In this document: positions 17,616 through 26,300 of the stretch, one piece after another | Layout: every line of letters begins with the position of its first letter | Position numbering within the stretch: the first letter of the stretch is position 1 | Origin: Anthoceros angustus | Lineage: Eukaryota; Plantae; Anthocerotophyta | NCBI GenBank assembly: GCA_010909165.1 | Contig: VJWM01000117.1 | Coordinates: 884,866 to 948,865, forward strand | DNA length: 64,000 nucleotides | Reading direction: 5' to 3' | Position numbers and translations under genes: made by a program | The notes under the pieces: model-generated | The model's database searches: none | What the model was told of the DNA's origin: nothing | What the model saw: the letters and a program-made list of their open reading frames with translations, nothing else

Positions 17616-19563
17616 GTGTTGATAATACAGGTCTGTGAAGCCATTCCAGTGCAAAAAGCGCCCAAGGCAGTAACGGTAACTTTTCCTTTGGAGGCTGTGC
17701 CAACAATTTCAGGTTACCTTCCTGTTAGCGACTCCAGCAGGTCCCAACTTTTCTACGTTTTCTATGAAGCAACAGATCCTCGGACCTCTCTTGTGGATGC
17801 CCCTCTCCTGCTCTGGCTTAATGGAGGCCCTGGGTGTTCAAGCCTTATTGGTTGCTTCTATGAACTTGGGCCATGGCGGTTTAGTAGAACCGGAAGTTTG
17901 CACCACAATGAATGGGCCTGGAATAACAGGTGTGTCTGGCTGTCAGACCGTTTTTTCGTTGTCGCCTGCTCGTTCTTCTACAACTTCATGGCTGATATGC
18001 TGGTCAAGTGGTTGCTTACTGACTGCTCCATCACATTTGCAAGCGTTGCAGGTATGGAGTGCTATTTGTCGACAGTCCTGTTGGGACAGGTTTCAGCATT
18101 GCATCTTCTGATGATGATGTCCCAAAGGATCAGCATACTGTAGCAGCCCATCTCCACCATGCGCTGTCTTCCTTTATCGCTGAAAATCCTTCATTTGAGC
18201 TGAGACCCCTTTTTTGGCCGGAGAAAGCTATGCCGGGAAGTATGTCCCGTCTCTTGCTCATTATCTGATAAACCATCCACAGCCTAAGAATCGGCACAAT
18301 GTTGGCGCCCAACTTATGGGAATAGTTGTTGGAAATGGGTTGACGCATCCACGGAGTCAGGTGATTTTGATGTCCTCTCTCCTTCTATTAAGTAGCCCTC
18401 TGAATGGCCGTCTTCACTTCTCTGTCACCCTAGTGGCAGTGTTCACGTCTATGATTCGGATTGCAGGTACAATCCCATTCAGATGTTGCTTACTGTTTCG
18501 GTCTACTTGATCAGCCACAAAAAGCACAATGCCAAAGTATGGCTGAAGAGGTTGTAGCCCTAATTGACAGGTAGATAAATCTTTCCATGGCTCTTCACGT
18601 CAAGCTCTGCGTGAATGTTGGGAACCCGCACATAAACTCCTGTTGAGCACGTGCCTGTTTCACCTTTTCCAGGGAGAGTGGCTGAAAGCCCATGAAGCCC
18701 GAACTGCACTCGTTCAGTGGATAGAGGAAACAAGTGGGATAGCAACACTACTGGATGTCCGTCGGCTAACAAAATACCATCATTTGGAGGTAAGTTTGAT
18801 ATCCAGCAATATGCTGTTCTACCCAGTTGTCAAGGCAGGTGAAGTTTTGTTGAATATTGTTTACTGTTTTGGCCCTTATCACAGGATGGCAGCGAGTACT
18901 TGGCGAAATTTCTTAATGAAGCCAACGTGAAGACCCTTTTGAAAGCTGATCCTGCAGTAACGTGGGTCAGCTGTAAACAATCCATTCGTAGCTTGATGGC
19001 TGAGGTTAGTCTTCCTGTCATGCGATCTGTCTGGGCGGTGCATTTTTGATGGGTGTGTACTCACATCAGACACCTACCTTTGCAGGATACCATGAAATCT
19101 ACCAAACAGCTAGTGGAAGACATTTTGGAAGCAGGGTATCCTGTTTTGTTATTTCAGGGACAGTATGATGCCAAAGATGGTCCATGTGGGTCCGAAGCAT
19201 GGATGAGGATGCTTAATTGGCAGCATGGTGAACGGTTTTGGGCACAAACAAGAGAAATCTGGAGGGTGAATGGGGCACATGCCGGTTACTGGAGGCAGAA
19301 CCAGAACCTCACACATGTTGTCTTTAGAGGGGCCGGACATCAGGTATAAAGGCGCTCCACTCATCGTACGCATTGCAGACTTTTGTGACTCTATGCCAGA
19401 TGTTTAGGATACTCAGCATGGAAATGTCCCTAGTGTCACAGTCGGCTTGCCTCGTTCTTCGTGACCGCAGGTTCCACACGACCAGCCGCAGTCATCCCTG
19501 GTTATGATTGAGACGTGGGTTGATCAGCAACTAAAAGCCAAACAGAGGCGTGCTTTACTGTGA
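17616..19563 (+). CDS. Serine carboxypeptidase-like protein (S10, SCPL50-like); true start uncertain
   Basis: SGYLPV, LFYVFYEA, PLLLWLNGGPGCSS, LFVDSPVGTGFS, catalytic AGESYAGKYVP, GNGLTHP, LLFQGQYDAKDG, HVVFRGAGHQ|VPHDQP, stop 19561-19563. One-base shift in a T homopolymer at about 18210. Confidence 0.9.
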
Positions 19564-19910
19564 AAGAGGGTCTTGCTCGATGGACCCAATTTGGTGAGAC
19601 ACAACTCCAGTTTGTCCCCAAGTAGTCTGGAGCAGAAGTTGTGCATCTATTCTTGGGGTTAGAGATGGCGTTTGAGTTCATCTCAATTTCGAACTCTGCC
19701 ATCATAATTAAAGACAAACCCAAACTAAGTAAAGTCATCAGCTTAAACTACAGCAAAGCTTTCATTTCAGCCCGCAACAAAGCTTGCCCCCAAAAGACTG
19801 TCCAATTGCTCGGCAAAAAGAAAAACTATCAATGGCACAGGCGACCAGGTCCATCAAGAAGTTCAGTCACGAACCAGGACACGGGTGAAACAGCTGTCGT
19901 TACTCCAGGG

Positions 19911-21853
19911 TTAGTGCTTAAACGACTGCTGCGAAGAATGCTTCACAAACCACTCTCCAAAAGGTGACGGTCTGCGGAGAAGAGCTCGTCGGCAAGACGC
20001 GTAGAGTTGAGCGGAATCCTGTCATGACAATCACGTTCACTGAGTGAGGGAGCTGGAGAGAAGCACAATGTGAAGTGCGGGTGAACCTAGTTGTGTATTC
20101 AAATGCAACCTTCATCTCCTGGTAGGCAGAATCACAGAAGTCTGTACGAGACAAGAAGTGCGGCATGAGCGAAAGGAAACAGGAAAGAAGCTGTCTCCTG
20201 CACAGTAAGCAGCGTGTGAGTTCAGTGTTCATAACAACTCCAGCAGCCCTTGTGACAAAAGTTGCATCCACTTCACCGGCATTCCATGAGCCACAGTGAG
20301 GAGAGTTTACTTGCAAATCTTCGATTGAGTAGCAGGAGAAAGTGCACCCTTGGACGATGTTCCTTGCTTCCGCCCGGTAGTTCCCAGGATCACATCATGC
20401 AAACCTGCCTTGTTCCAACTTATGGAGTACCTGAACCAAGCAACCCAGCCAGCAAGCAAGCGATATGACATGAATAAAACATCGCCCGTCAAGAAGTACA
20501 GGTACAACAGCACAATCCAAGGTTGTGTGCGACTAGACCCGACCCGCAGGTTGGAACCAAGCAGTTACCGACAGGCTGCCGGAACTCGCTGGGAGCCAGG
20601 GGGGCCTTGAAGGTAGCCGGCTGAATCAGCTTGAAAGGAGCAAGAAAGGTGTCGGCAAAAGGAACAAGACGGCCATGAACAGCTCGCTTCAATGCTTCCA
20701 ACGCAAGCCGGCTACACTCGGAGTCCGGACCGTGCAGACCATTGCCAGAGCACCCATCCACAGCCACTGATATGGACGAAAGATATATAGGCTCCGCGAC
20801 GAAGTGCATGAGAAGAGCTCCTGTCCACACCAATTCCAAGCTCTTTGCTTCACAGAGCATTTCAAACACCAGACGAACCACCACAGCACACAGAACAGCA
20901 CCAAACCCCGACGCAAACGGATCGCAAAATCAAAGCTCCAACCTTGCAGGCCAAGCACATTCCAGCGCGCAATCTTATCACTGCAGCTCATGCACAGAGT
21001 GGTCTCTCCACGCCCCGGCTTCCTGCGCACCACTCCCGTCTCCTGACACGCAGATGTCGACGCTGCACCATAGCCGAGGCATCCACAGCAGGGAAATATG
21101 CAAGCATCCCCGCACGGCAACTGGCTGATGTAGAGATGGAACCGCAGTCCTCGCCGCAGCCTACACCCGCTCCTCTGCCCTTGCTCCGCAGTCTCCACAA
21201 GCTCGAAAATGGATCCGCCATCGCCGTCACACAAGCGCTCGATCTCCGAATAGAAATACCTGCCGCCGCACCAGCAACGAATTTAGACTCCCGCCTCCTG
21301 TCCCTCCTCCTCCTCCAGCTTCCTGCTTCACGACCCGACCGCAGCATCAGCGAAGATCAAGAGAAGAAAATTCCCACCGGAGCAGAGCCCGGCGGGCTAT
21401 CACTTCCGCGTGCGAGTCGTGAACCACGTCTCCAAGCTCGCTCAGACGCGACCACCCGAGGCACTTGGTTCCGGTTCCCAGAGTCACCACCTCCACCGAG
21501 CCTGAGTCGTGCGGGTCGCGGTTTGAGACGTGGTTGGAGACGCTGTTGGAGTCCAGGTTGGAGACGCTTGATGAGTCGTGGGAGTCGCGGTTGGAGACGT
21601 GGTTGGAGACGTCGTTGCCCTCTCTAGACCTCTGCTCAGTCGTTGGCTTGGCGGAGACGCTGTTGGCGACGCTGGTGGAGACGCTGCGGGGGGACCCGGG
21701 GTTGGAGACGCTCGAGTCGTGGGAGTCGCGGGACAGAAGGAAGGCGGCCAGGACGGTGATCTCCTTGCCCTGCGGTTTGCCCTTGTTCGGCAGGGATCGG
21801 TATCGCTCGAGCGCGAGGCGAGCCACAGTGGTGCCCCAGAGCTCTGCGGCCAT
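19911..21853 (-). CDS. TAD1: tRNA-specific adenosine deaminase 1 (A37 of tRNA-Ala; ADAT1/TAD1)
   Basis: [53 protein letters not shown]|[43 protein letters not shown]|[17 protein letters not shown]; last exon ..[16 protein letters not shown]. Confidence 0.95.
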
Positions 21854-22561
21854 GGCGGCTGCCTCGGCGGCTGCTGTCGCGTTTATTCTCCTGCTCCTGC
21901 TGGCTTCCGGTGCGGATTGCGCGGCATCCAGGCAGCAGCAGCAGCAGCAAGACGGGGCGGCTACCTGGTTGAGGGCCGGGTGCGGGTGGAGGCCTTAGCC
22001 GACAAGGTAGCGGCTTCCGTCAAGCTTCTGCTGAACGGGGGCCAACGGGTGACATTTCTGCAGCCAGACGGCTACTTCGCCTTCCATGGCGTGCCTCCGG
22101 GAACCCATCTCCTGGAGGTTGCGGCGCCGGGATACTCCTTTGCCCCGGTGCGGCTGGATGTGAGCGAGAGGCTTCGGGGAGATGTGCATGCCATCTACAC
22201 CGAGACTCGGCGGATCCTGCCGGACCCTCTGCTGCTGGATCCGGCTCAGGTGGAGCAGTACTACGAGAAGCGGGAGCCGTTTTCTGTGCTGGGTCTGCTC
22301 AAGAGCCCCATGGGGCTCATGGTTGGCTTCATGGGTTTGGCAGTGTTCGTTTTGCCTAAGCTTATGGACAGCGTGGGTGGGTATTGCTTAGCTTTCGATG
22401 GTGTCTGGATCGGGTGCATGCCACAAACCCTAGTCACGGATCTCACTCTCGCTTGTTTCGTTGTGTGATCAGATCCAGAGGAGATGAAGAGAGTACAGGA
22501 GGAGTTGCGGAACAGGCCGGCCCCATCCTTTAGCAACCTTCTACAAGGACGAAGCTCTTGA
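21852..22561 (+). CDS. EMC7: ER membrane protein complex subunit 7 (DUF2012), 2 exons
   Basis: Signal peptide [24 protein letters not shown] and a Q6 tract; after a 1-nt shift in a G run (about 21955) it continues GYLVEGRV..LLLNGG..TFLQPDGYFAFHGVPPGTHLLEV..YYEKREPFSVLGLLKSPMGLMVGF..PKLMDSV|DPEEMKRVQEE..*. Confidence 0.92.
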
Positions 22562-23390
22562 CACATGACAAGACCCACCTGTGTTGCTCACCCCTGTGTT
22601 TGTGCAAGGGAAGGGATGGTTTGAGGCATCCAGTACTTTGTATGAATTGTGGGATTGGATCCCCCACATCCACATCGGGTTTCGACGAATTCTTTTCCTG
22701 GAATTTCTCGTCTCCAGGATACTGTGGTATGTTTGATACAGGCTTTGTTCGTGACGACGTGCCAACCCTGGGGACATCGTGGCATCACAGGCCAGAGTAT
22801 GTAGGCTCGACGGGCTGCAGTGCTTACATTCGTAAATTGTTATCTGTATCAGCATTGCAGCTACAGTACAAACGATGTTGGACTGGACATGATAATATGT
22901 ACTGTTCACTACATGGAATGAACCTGTCCACACAGAAGTGTTTACAAAAGTTGTTCATCCTTGAATGAGGCGCATCCCTCCGAAAAAGAAGTTTTGGAGG
23001 CTTTCCTTGTCTACTCCCAGAGATACCCTTCAGCCAGTTATTACCCGGTCAGACTCTGCTGGCAGCGATTCCTTCCCAATGAGGGGCGGAACTCAAGCCA
23101 CGAGGCCTTTTTCGACTGCCTGGGACAGGTTCATATGAAACCAGTACATATTTAATGAGTGGACTGTTTGCGTACGCCACCACCAGCTGGTCATGGGCTG
23201 CCAGGATTCCTTTCCTTAATCACAGTGATTATGGGTCTGTAATTGGGATGCACACAACGTGCGAGTCTTCACGCAATTATTGGTAGAGTCAAGTGGGCTC
23301 GTCTTGTGGGGAAGATGTGATACATATTCCAGCATTCCAAATCGTTTTGTTCCTTTCTCTCAGTTCTCCAGCGGAGTGGAGATTCTGGCG

Positions 23391-26300
23391 ATGGCGGATT
23401 TGGAGCAGCCCCTGCTGCGTACCAAAAAGGTGTTCCCCGACTGCCCTGGATGCAAAGTTGCCCAGCGAGTAGCCGCCAGTAAATCTCCTCCGTATTCGCA
23501 GCTGCTCTTTGTGGCCCTCATCATCTTCTGCAATGGTGAGCACCTCTGTCCGCAGAATGTGTGGGATCTGGCAATCGATGCCAGCAGCTGTGAAGCTCAT
23601 GCTGATCCGTGCCGATATCGTGCTTTACTGCAGCAATGCCCACTACCTCCCTGTTCCCTTATGTCTACTTCATGGTACAGTTTCCTACCGCCCACTTGGA
23701 GCAAGTCTTGCACATTGCTGTCAGTGTTTCATGATTGAGTTGATGCAGGTCAAGGATTTCAACGTCGCTGGAAGAGACGAAGATATTGGTATCTACGCTG
23801 GATTGTTAGGTATGCCGTCCCAGTCCATTGGCTCCGAGCTGCTGCCAGCCCTTTCCTGTTCTGTGCTGTGCTGCGCTTTGCTGAGAATGCAATGCTGGGT
23901 GGCCTCCAGGCTCGTCATTCATGTTCGGGAGGTTCTTGAGCTCCTGGCAGTGGGGCATTTGGTCTGACAAATATGGCAGGAGGCCCATCATCCTCATAGG
24001 TCTCGCTTCCATGTGAGTGCAGCAGTCCAGCTGTATTCCTTAATGCCTTGCGGATTTCCACCAGGAAGGAATATAACCGACGGCAAATGCTGGTGCAGAG
24101 CTATTTTTAACTTGCTGTTTGGAGCAAGCTCCAATTACTGGATGGCCCTCACCTGCCGCCTGCTACTCGGTCTCCTCAATGGCTCGTTTGGGCCCGCGAA
24201 GGTGGGAGAATCTGATGAACCGGTTGCTTCGACTTTTGCACATTGACTTATATCAGAAGGCATTTCAACGGAAGGTGCTTATTGCGCAGGTCTTCGCATC
24301 GGAGGTTTGCAATGATCAGCAGCAAGCCCTCAGTGTGTCAGTTGTGAGTAATCCAACCCAGTTCTTCGTCTGCTGGTTTTGCGTGTTTCCGTCCAGAAGT
24401 TATAGTGTTCATGGCTGCCGAGCTGATCCCGTCAGATAAGAGACCGTCCGTCCTTACTTGCGTGACTGTGCAGGTAGGTACGTCATGGGGCCTAGGCTTA
24501 ATCGTTGGCCCTGCGATTGGGGGATATCTCGCACGGGTGAGCTAGGCTGCTGGGTTGTCGAAGGTTGCTGCACACTCCCGTCTCTGGTCGTCATTCCGCC
24601 CATTTGTTTGTAAGACATCTCGTATGGGACGCTTGTGCAGCCATCTTTGAGCTATCCTGACCTGTTCCCTCCCGGCTCCTTCTTCGATCGGTAAGTCACA
24701 CTGATCCAAGACCTGCCAGCGAGCTTTGCCAGGGAATGGAGCTCACCACGGTCTGTTGTGCAGTGCAGCTACCCATATCTGCTGCCCTCTATTGTCGCCG
24801 CTGTTACTGCTACCGTGGGAGCCATCATAACAACTCAGCTTCCAGTTACGTTGTCCTCCAGACTCAGTACCGTCTTCCAGACTAGAATGCAGATTGATGC
24901 TAGTTGTTTCTGAAGTGATTAAACTGTGCAGGAGACCCTCCATTTCCATGAAGATGCACCCAAGCTTGCCGTTACCTACGATGATGTAGGAAAGACGGAA
25001 GCCGCAGGGTTCAATGACGAGGACATTGTCCCGGTTTCAGACGCCCAAATCGTGGAACATTCACCACCTAAGGTGAAGAAATCGGCATGGGCTTTGTTCA
25101 AGAACTACCCATTGCTGGCTTCGATTTATGTCTTCTCCATATGGGCGCTGTTCGAGGTTTCCTTCACAGAAGTAGGTCAATTCCACTCCCGCCTTGCCAC
25201 ATTGTCTGCCTGCTGTGGACTTGGCAAGCTTGGCATTAAAGTACCTTGCTCTTCAGTGTTTTTCTTTCTGGGCACTGAGTCCAAAAAATATTGGAGGGCT
25301 GGGTTTTACATCCGTTCAAGTTGGAAACATTTTAACCGTCTCAGGTACAGCCACCTACCTGCTGCTGTTTCTGTTTTTCAACTATGCTTGGTCTATATCT
25401 GAAGCCACTGTTCGATCCGCGTGTGCTAGGTTTTGGGTTGCTGTTTTGGCAGCTTTTTGTCTTCCCTCCTGTAACCAATTACCTTGGACCCAGTAAAGTC
25501 ATTCGATTATCTGCTGTAAGACTCCTTGTTGTCAGGTTGCTGTTCTTCTGCTGTAAACTGTGGCATGTTAGTTTCTGGCTTGTTTGTGGCATCTCATCTA
25601 ACATTGCCACGGTCTACATTTGTTTTCTGCTGTTGAAATCCGCTGCTTGTAACATTGCTCAATGGATGCAGCTTCTAGCATTGCCCACGATGGTTTTATT
25701 TCCGCTGGCAGGCCAACTGGTGGGCGTCCCTACGTTCCTACTCATTCTTTTGATATCACTGTACAAGAATATCGCATCGGTGAGGACCCTCATTTACAGC
25801 AGAGTGTCCATTCCTAGCAGCAAAGTTGTCATTTGGAACCGAGCATCTGAGGCTGTGTCATCGCTTTCCTCGCTTCTGTGATAGACTTCAACCATGGACG
25901 GAGCATTTCTACTCGTCAACAATGCTGTGGTAACTGATCTCGATCTGACCAATCTGGTGCATGCCGTGCAGCTTCTCTAGCGCTTGCATCCTGAACCCAT
26001 GCCATGTGGCTTTTCCTATGATCAGAAACCGAGTGAAAGAGGTGCAGCAAACGGTCTAGCAGTCAGTACGATGGCTTTGACGACTACCATCGCTCCAGAG
26101 ACTGGAGGGCTACTGTACGTGGTTCTTGATCACAGGCTTGTGACAGAATTTTATGGAAGCATGTACTTGGGTCGTAATTTAGTGATCTCGTGTCGTCTTG
26201 GCGCAGGTTCTCTTGGGCTCTGAGTCGAAATTCTGATTTCCTCCCTGGTACAGTGAAGACTTCATTACCCTTAAGCTTCCCAGTCTATCATGAATTTGTT

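Follow-up and report, generated by a model that had tools for sequence, protein, structure and literature searches.

Overlapping start codons of TAD1/ADAT1 and EMC7 in Anthoceros angustus: a head-to-head gene pair without a spacer and with putative promoters in coding exons

Introduction

Divergent natural antisense transcripts in cis (cis-NATs) have been defined as a class in Arabidopsis (PMC4463847), and the human head-to-head overlapping pair INO80E/HIRIP3 has been studied as well (PMC11890862). The members of a divergent cis-NAT pair lie on opposite strands with facing 5′ ends, are expressed together and produce mRNAs that are complementary at those ends. Bidirectional promoters, described in Arabidopsis (PMC2772851, PMC3834115), likewise serve divergent genes of the housekeeping type, and in their classical form they occupy an intergenic spacer from which non-overlapping transcripts run outward. 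At the level of translation, the TISU element (translation initiator of short 5′ UTRs; PMC2518114, PMC3177215) is one conceivable means of starting at an ATG very close to the cap: it is known from mammals only, places the ATG ~5–30 nt from the cap and needs AAGAUGG followed by CGGC. In mammals, the genes that carry TISU have housekeeping functions, and the median length of their leaders is 12 nt (PMC2518114).

Here we analyse a 64-kb window, the whole stretch of Anthoceros angustus DNA under study, in which the minus-strand gene TAD1/ADAT1 and the plus-strand gene EMC7 (ER membrane protein complex subunit 7) begin at one shared site. The pair is a probable member of the known class of head-to-head overlapping gene pairs. 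Like divergent cis-NAT pairs, the two genes lie on opposite strands with facing 5′ ends and are expressed together, and their mRNAs would be complementary at those ends; what differs is that the overlap reaches the start codons, and every base of each leader would be coding sequence of the partner. The pair also resembles the genes served by bidirectional promoters in being divergent, of the housekeeping type and probably under one shared regulatory region, but it has no spacer and its transcription start sites would have to cross. As in TISU genes, the ATG of EMC7 is that of a housekeeping gene and is followed by GCGGC; the plus-strand site GCGGCCATGGCGGC matches the 3′ half of the element, whereas GCC replaces the upstream AAG. 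A search of the literature for head-to-head genes in Anthoceros found nothing relevant.

The Shared Start Site

The first-pass annotation of this DNA had placed both start codons in a perfect 8-bp palindrome, GCCATGGC, and direct reading of the window sequence confirms the palindrome and the positions of the CAT and the ATG within it (Table 1). The two ATGs overlap by 2 bases inside CCATGG, which gives the coding sequences a spacing of −2 nt; as had been claimed, there is no intergenic DNA, the start codons themselves being shared in part, and both reading frames open with M-A-A. Each ATG has, on its own strand, a G at −3 and at +4. In each start context the G at −3 and the C at −2 come from the Ala-2 codon of the partner, and this makes the site palindromic. 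The window contains two copies of the octamer where 1.5 are expected, and 45 of 100 shuffles have two or more; its frequency is thus at chance level and it is notable only for its place at two gene starts.

Table 1. Coordinates of features at the TAD1/ADAT1–EMC7 locus, numbered from the first base of the window.
Feature	Position	Strand	Basis or remark
Palindrome GCCATGGC	21849-21856	.	two superimposed Kozak-type contexts
TAD1/ADAT1 start codon (CAT)	21851-21853	-	first in-frame ATG after stop; N-terminus alignment to homologues
TAD1/ADAT1 coding region, 461 aa, 6 coding exons	19911-21853	-	RNA-contig splice joints with CT..AC ends; joined exons aligned to full-length homologues; colinear Pfam
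TAD1 coding exons	21853-21378, 21259-20943, 20820-20544, 20430-20311, 20197-20110, 20018-19911	-	
TAD1 low-complexity insert, 76 residues (43-118), lineage-specific	21500-21727	-	missing from aligned homologues
TAD1 3′ UTR intron	19696-19874	-	
EMC7 start codon	21852-21854	+	first ATG of its own frame; RNA-corrected frame colinear with plant EMC7
EMC7 exon 1: signal peptide, beta-sandwich domain, transmembrane segment	21852-22376	+	PF09430 8.9e-23; alignment; RNA contigs
G run	21954-21957	+	G4 in window and DNA contig X24; G5 in RNA contigs of three species
EMC7 intron, GT..AG, 96 nt	22377-22472	+	pieces 21376-22375 and 22472-22955 of RNA contig X1
EMC7 exon 2, coding part	22473-22561	+	stop TGA 22559-22561

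By homology, the minus-strand gene is TAD1/ADAT1, a tRNA adenosine deaminase with predicted A37 activity. Its 461-residue product is colinear with plant homologues of 418–439 residues, Pfam A_deamin (PF02137) matches colinearly over exons 1–3 (1.4e-13, 4e-23 and 3.3e-07), and the HAEV, PCGD and SCSDK motifs (the zinc/catalytic H-A-E and Cys motifs) align with those of the homologues. The homologues place their initiator methionine 2–3 residues ahead of the block WG...LPKKGKPQG, and the protein of the window starts at the same place; together with its being the first ATG to follow a stop in that frame, this alignment bears out the proposed start at 21853. In ADAT1/TAD1 proteins the LPKKGKPQG block stands immediately ahead of the deaminase core. 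Exon 1 holds no second methionine. The protein collections yielded no hornwort relatives for either gene: the best TAD1 matches are 60–70% identical over the matched stretches, and the best EMC7 match is a lycophyte protein, 69% identical.

The established target of TAD1/ADAT1 is A37 in tRNA-Ala rather than double-stranded RNA, and a Pfam scan of exons 1–3 (down to 20544) returned A_deamin alone and no dsRNA-binding domain. The significance that the first-pass annotation had seen in a possible RNA duplex at a gene encoding an adenosine deaminase accordingly has no basis.

Exon 1 of TAD1 also carries the low-complexity insert, to which none of the aligned homologues has an equivalent and much of which consists of 12-nt tandem repeats (GGTTGGAGACGT on the plus strand). 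It sits upstream of the EMC7 ATG, at a distance of 125–350 nt. Within it, those indels that were listed for the relatives leave the frame intact (+6, +6 and, inside 12 nt, three single deletions). At its position, open reading frames that read through on genomic contigs from other plants point to an intron.

The plus-strand gene encodes EMC7, provided that one G present in the RNA is added to the genomic sequence. With this base, the ATG at 21852 opens a protein of 204 residues that aligns end to end with 12 EMC7 proteins of land plants (198–219 residues), including ...SPMGLMVGFM... and the C-terminal tail DPEEMKRVQEE, and whose signal peptide has the same length as those of its relatives. The intron boundary was set by moving the cut in the RNA contig X1 by one base to give GT..AG, the sole cut that yields ...KLMDSVDPEEMKR, and the RNA contig ends near 22955, beyond the stop codon. 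An upstream coding exon for EMC7 was considered and rejected: the frame of the domain has no ATG, no splice joint was seen among those listed, and the ATG at 21852 already gives a signal peptide of normal length. On the evidence of these alignments, we regard both ATGs as the natural starts of TAD1 and EMC7.

A Missing Base in the EMC7 Reading Frame

In the window DNA, the reading frame from the ATG at 21852 stops at 21998 after 48 codons, and the EMC7 domain (PF09430) lies in a different frame without an ATG of its own; the gene as given in the genome is interrupted, which the earlier reading of the sequence missed. The EMC7 start and signal peptide that it proposed are supported by the RNA, with its run of five Gs (G5), its 204-residue frame and its alignment to homologues, but the frame is broken in the DNA, where the run has four (G4). 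The additional G is inserted behind 21953 in the RNA contigs of the A. angustus sample and of two relatives. With G5, which the RNA of each of the three species has, the frame is whole again. G4 most likely represents a single-base deletion that persisted in a long-read assembly and not a biological feature. The A. angustus genome is a Nanopore assembly with Pilon polishing, obtained from one haploid gametophyte, and a small-RNA library of the species exists as well (PMC7027989).

The DNA contig X24, which shares its sample with the RNA, has G4 like the window, and the frameshift may thus be real in that DNA. The deletion would then be a frameshift allele of the sequenced individual or lie in one of two near-identical copies, and the G5 RNA would come from another allele, copy or individual. 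The presence of G4 in both the window and X24, next to G5 in X1, an RNA contig filed under that sample label, speaks for such a difference, as does the one base difference of X24, at 21168, where it departs from the RNA and the window alike, so that the data for the organism are not fully homogeneous. Against it, X1 is otherwise identical to the window over 2941 nt; a search of the 64-kb window found no second copy of EMC7; the source plant was a single haploid gametophyte (PMC7027989); and the remaining departures of X24 from the window are all deletions, 22 net letters over 5.7 kb, as expected of error-prone long reads that may be the assembly’s own input. The base of X24 at 21168, contradicted by both the RNA and the window, also speaks for G4 as an assembly error. 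On balance we consider a real deletion unlikely. Were it real, the G4 transcript would be lost to nonsense-mediated decay, since the exon junction at 22376 follows its stop at 21998 at a distance of over 350 nt, and the head-to-head layout would be unaffected.

A short intron that repairs the frame was rejected: between 21911 and 21950, introns bounded by GT..AG could be only 20–35 nt long, too short for a plant spliceosomal intron, and the RNA contigs carry an inserted G rather than a skip. Polymerase slippage or insertional editing, adding the G to transcripts from a frameshifted gene so that an intact EMC7 mRNA results, would account for G5 in RNA against G4 in DNA among runs filed under one sample, but four Gs in a row hardly favour slippage, G5 is likewise present in the relatives (seen in RNA alone), we know of no such addition in plant nuclear mRNAs, and an assembly or base-calling deletion is the simpler account, all of which makes this reading very improbable.

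Transcription Across the Shared Start

The RNA evidence consists of unstranded Logan contigs (k = 31 as stated). X1, an RNA contig of 2941 nt from the A. angustus sample with no mismatches to the window, runs unbroken over 21376–22375, with minus-strand TAD1 introns spliced out on its left and the plus-strand EMC7 intron spliced out on its right. Organism C (contig X4, record 6) and organism B (contig X9, record 10) show the same layout at ~5–6% divergence, and the contigs of all three species cross 21376–22372 without a branch point. Both genes are expressed and spliced, and their arrangement is conserved in three related species. Since RNA coverage is unbroken over the shared start and there is no intergenic DNA, any 5′ leader would have to lie within the first coding exon of the partner; the earlier claim to this effect thus gains support from the unstranded contigs of three species. 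The two mRNAs, judged from these unstranded contigs, would then be complementary at their 5′ ends. One contig that spans two genes is not proof of two overlapping transcripts, and in a de Bruijn graph the junction could also be spanned by small amounts of genomic DNA or pre-mRNA. For the contig to be continuous at k = 31, the combined length of both leaders must be no less than ~28 nt.

Outside the lineage, EMC7 does not adjoin TAD1 in Marchantia, where its upstream neighbour is a purple acid phosphatase, or in Nymphaea, where it is a ubiquitin hydrolase. In Ceratopteris there is no gene within 10 kb.

The upstream ATGs on the two strands bear on the length of the leaders. On the plus strand there is none in the 280 nt upstream of 21852, compared with ~3.1 expected from composition, a weakly unusual stretch (~0.05 by composition) that is partly due to the preference for CAC as the His codon in TAD1. 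On the minus strand the nearest upstream ATG is 74 nt before the TAD1 start, and several more follow beyond it. As a signature of leaders, depletion of upstream ATGs is weak for EMC7 and absent for TAD1 beyond 74 nt. The TAD1 leader is probably short (< ~75 nt), and that of EMC7 may extend up to ~280 nt.

In the reading that we favour, TAD1 and EMC7 form a divergent (head-to-head), cis-antisense pair in which both core promoters would lie inside coding exons, the start sites would cross each other and the leader of each mRNA would be transcribed from within the first coding exon of the other gene. We put the probability of this explanation as a whole (zero spacer, mutually antisense leaders and G4 as an assembly deletion) at about 70%.

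The leaders could instead both be very short, from a few to ~30 nt, with the ATGs read near the cap as with the animal TISU, the start sites tens of bases from the palindrome and the antisense overlap minimal. The plus-strand sequence ATGGCGGC equals what we take to be the 3′ half of the TISU consensus, and on the TAD1 side upstream ATGs occur from 74 nt outward without depletion beyond. The upstream half of the element is unmatched, with GGCC here against AAG in AAGAUGG (PMC2518114), TISU has been described for mammals and a literature search for it in plants found nothing, and the lower bound that contig continuity sets on the summed leaders also counts against such an arrangement, which we hold to be improbable.

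Within the favoured arrangement, the overlap may be a selected region of dual use rather than an accident of genome compaction. The core promoter and the upstream elements of EMC7 would then lie in TAD1 exon 1, concentrated in the insert (−125 to −350 from the EMC7 ATG), which would be former regulatory or intronic DNA now translated into protein; the promoter of TAD1 would lie in the signal-peptide and domain sequence of EMC7, and the crossing start sites would couple the expression of the two genes. This extension is speculative, and we give it a low probability.

Less likely still is a distant promoter for one or both genes, acting through a non-coding first exon and a 5′-UTR intron, which would require no promoter within coding sequence. 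5′-UTR introns are common in plants, and one contig of organism C enters the region from within TAD1 intron 1, with a loose end at 21294; this end is not a splice site, bases 21292–21293 being CG and not AG or AC. Among the joints listed, none ends near either ATG, and the absence of branch points across the junction in three species further argues against a remote promoter.

Implications

For annotation, the missing G means that gene callers run on this assembly will break EMC7 or give it a wrong start. For the biology of gene pairs, if the start sites map as inferred, the locus would offer a clear natural example of core promoters for Pol II that work inside conserved coding sequence, and of two co-expressed mRNAs antisense to each other over both start codons, in a layout that is conserved in three species and small enough for dissection with reporters.

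Shared Start Site of TAD1 and EMC7

The sequence around the shared start reads gagctctgcGGCCATGGCggctgcc, and direct reading of the window bears out the first-pass annotation, which had proposed that TAD1 (ADAT1, a tRNA adenosine deaminase) on the minus strand and EMC7 (ER membrane protein complex subunit 7) on the plus strand begin from overlapping ATGs within one palindrome. The two start codons have two bases in common, the spacing between the coding sequences is −2 nt, and each ATG has G at −3, G at +4 and an Ala codon next. The site is palindromic because each gene's Ala-2 codon supplies positions −3 and −2 of its partner's ATG: the TAD1 codon GCC lies at 21850-21848, with bases 21849-21850 at positions −3 and −2 of the EMC7 ATG, and, the palindrome being symmetric, the EMC7 codon likewise places two bases in the TAD1 start context. 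With two copies in the window where 1.5 are expected, the octamer GCCATGGC is by itself unremarkable; what counts is its position at two gene starts.

Features of the TAD1/EMC7 locus (window coordinates)
Feature	Position	Strand	Basis or remark
Perfect palindrome GCCATGGC	21849-21856	both	direct reading
TAD1 start (CAT on plus strand)	21851-21853	−	direct reading
EMC7 start ATG	21852-21854	+	direct reading
TAD1 low-complexity insert, residues 43-118 (76 residues)	21500-21727	−	between two conserved blocks
TAD1 stop codon	19913-19911	−	joined exons
EMC7 intron used in organism A (A. angustus)	22377-22472	+	RNA contig
Serine carboxypeptidase-like gene, Peptidase_S10	exons from ~17616	+	Pfam family

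The TAD1 Start and Its Low-Complexity Insert

The TAD1 open reading frame (21853-21347, minus strand) opens at the first in-frame ATG following a stop. Exon 1 holds the start of the adenosine-deaminase (editase) domain (Pfam PF02137, 1.4e-13), which exons 2 and 3 carry on in order. When joined at the RNA-contig splice joints, after adjustment of these to minus-strand GT..AG, the exons encode 461 residues that are colinear with plant homologues of 418-439 residues and contain the HAEV, PCGD and SCSDK motifs. Exhaustive HMMER searching with exon 1 as query returned 1043 relatives, nearly all matching in two blocks (query residues ~1-45 and ~117-159). In the alignment, the full-length relatives have a Met 2-3 residues ahead of the W-G...Y.SLPKKGKPQG.E.TVLAAFL block and some carry up to 20 additional N-terminal residues, so that the N-terminal length of TAD1 is nothing unusual. 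Exon 1 has no second Met, which leaves the ATG at 21853 as the sole workable start, barring an upstream coding exon, of whose splicing to TAD1 there is no sign. The substrate of ADAT1/TAD1 is tRNA, and the three TAD1 exons scanned contain no dsRNA-binding domain; the earlier suggestion that double-stranded RNA at this locus might be linked to the deaminase it encodes is thus without basis.

The insert between the conserved blocks is rich in Ser, Asn, Asp and His, consists in good part of 12-nt tandem repeats (GGTTGGAGACGT) and is found in none of the aligned relatives. The indels listed for organisms B and C, both relatives of A. angustus, comprise a pair of 6-nt insertions plus three deletions of one base each inside 12 nt; these preserve the frame, and the insert therefore behaves as coding sequence. 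Some read-through open reading frames on other plants' genomic contigs suggest an intron at this position. A speculative, and improbable, idea is that the insert began as non-coding or regulatory DNA and today acts as the EMC7 promoter.

The EMC7 Start and a One-Base Frame Break

The plus-strand ATG at 21852 opens a good predicted signal peptide. In the window DNA, however, its frame runs for only 48 codons, to a stop at 21998, a fault that the first-pass annotation missed, and the EMC7 beta-sandwich domain (PF09430, 8.9e-23) lies in another frame, open from 21578, with no ATG ahead of the domain. RNA contigs from all three organisms carry one additional G behind 21953, making the run at 21954-21957 five long (G5) rather than four (G4). 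With G5 and removal of the intron, the ATG encodes a 204-residue EMC7 (...RQQQQQQDGGGYLVEGRV...KLMDSVDPEEMKRVQEELRNRPAPSFSNLLQGRSS) that aligns end to end with 12 land-plant EMC7 proteins of 198-219 residues, with an equal distance from Met to the GY.VEGRV motif and an N-terminal length that is nothing unusual. The plus-strand start is therefore right, on the RNA sequence only, and the two starts proposed earlier are both sound. As the N-terminal lengths of both proteins are ordinary, the overlap is an exact alignment of two otherwise normal starts.

In the donor region of EMC7 exon 1 (22373-22380, GTGGGTGG), a pair of GT donors lies 4 nt apart, and splicing preserves the frame only at the second, the donor used in organism A; the last codon there is AT(A) in the relatives versus GTG in the window (Val to Ile).

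G4 is most likely a long-read deletion left in the assembly. The A. angustus genome is a wtdbg assembly of Nanopore reads with Pilon polishing (PMC7027989), and the G run directly follows a (CAG)6 run. A frameshift allele or copy, with G4 real in the DNA and its transcript going to nonsense-mediated decay, is unlikely: a DNA contig with the same sample label as the A. angustus RNA contig does read G4, but it also lacks 22 net letters relative to the window over 5.7 kb (19200-24900), with one base difference, a T at 21168 where window and RNA read C. Such a bias towards deletions suggests error-prone data, which may be what the assembly was itself built from; the contig is thus neither an exact copy of the assembly nor an independent test of it. 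Insertion of the additional G at the RNA level, to reconcile G4 in DNA with G5 in RNA, is very improbable. Annotation of the locus should correct the G4 fault.

Transcription Over the Shared Start

TAD1 and EMC7 are both expressed and spliced, and every position over the shared start is covered by RNA 31-mers. The A. angustus RNA contig (2941 nt, no mismatch to the window) extends from the adjacent serine carboxypeptidase gene across the TAD1 exons and both ATGs and, past the EMC7 intron, reaches 22955; the minus-strand introns of TAD1 are removed and 21376-22375 is unbroken over both ATGs. Contigs from organisms B and C (~5.3% and ~6.3% divergent from the window) are likewise unbroken over 21376-22372, with the EMC7 intron spliced and, in organism C, TAD1 intron 1 spliced too. 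The head-to-head, zero-spacer layout is thus present in three species. Contig depths suggest that expression of the two genes differs by a few-fold at most. These contigs are directionless, and one that spans two genes is not one transcript; stray DNA or pre-mRNA could also bridge the junction.

At a zero-spacer pair, any mRNA that is not leaderless must have its leader inside the partner's coding exon, and by this logic the TAD1 and EMC7 leaders very likely overlap inside one another's coding exons. The mRNA overlap equals both leaders plus 2 bases, and contiguity at k = 31 requires the leaders to sum to at least ~28 nt. Such an overlap, deduced here, could have consequences for promoter placement and regulation, as the first-pass annotation proposed. 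A remote leader exon may be spliced to either gene, but among the joints listed no splice end falls near either ATG. In organism C, one contig has a loose end at 21294; its flanking bases are not those of a splice site, and it is probably intron divergence or unspliced RNA.

On the plus strand, no ATG occurs over the 280 nt upstream of 21852, versus ~3.1 expected by base composition (P(0) ~0.05), in part because TAD1 uses CAC for every His; farther upstream, an 18-codon uORF would begin with the ATG at 21571. The closest minus-strand ATG is 74 nt ahead of the TAD1 start, with a potential uORF of 14 codons, and EMC7 exon 1 has nine CAT triplets versus ~4.7 expected, with no depletion past that ATG. 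This pattern of upstream ATGs is mild evidence that the TAD1 leader is short, and it leaves room for a longer EMC7 leader.

Neighbouring Genes

The 3′ end of TAD1 overlaps the 3′ end of the carboxypeptidase-like gene (19200-20018), and one RNA contig joins these two genes and EMC7. A TAD1 3′-UTR intron (19696-19874) is spliced out in A. angustus, but organism B and organism C contigs contain this stretch. Within 19200-24900, only a ~370-nt gap at 23020-23330 lacks RNA coverage; EMC7 finishes ahead of it (3′ end at ~22955), and the next gene on the plus strand begins after it (contigs start at 23328-23351, open reading frame from ~23381). This gap shows the compactness of the region.

Origin and Relation to Known Gene Pairs

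The layout is shared by the three related species, and EMC7 has no A_deamin gene beside it in Marchantia polymorpha or Nymphaea colorata; in Ceratopteris no called gene lies within 10 kb of EMC7. On these genomes, the pairing is therefore confined to one lineage and was not inherited from the land-plant ancestor.

Plus-strand ATGGCGGC is reminiscent of TISU, a mammalian element that permits translation to begin 12 nt from the cap (PMC2518114), but in its 3′ half only; the upstream half shows no match, and we found no TISU in plants in the literature. TAD1/EMC7 belongs with head-to-head (divergent) overlapping pairs, or cis-natural antisense transcripts, a known class (PMC4463847) of which human INO80E/HIRIP3 has been studied experimentally (PMC11890862). 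Its difference from these pairs is one of degree: the two coding sequences run into each other, and at −2 nt a conventional bidirectional promoter has no room. TAD1/EMC7 is an extreme, conserved case of this head-to-head overlapping class.
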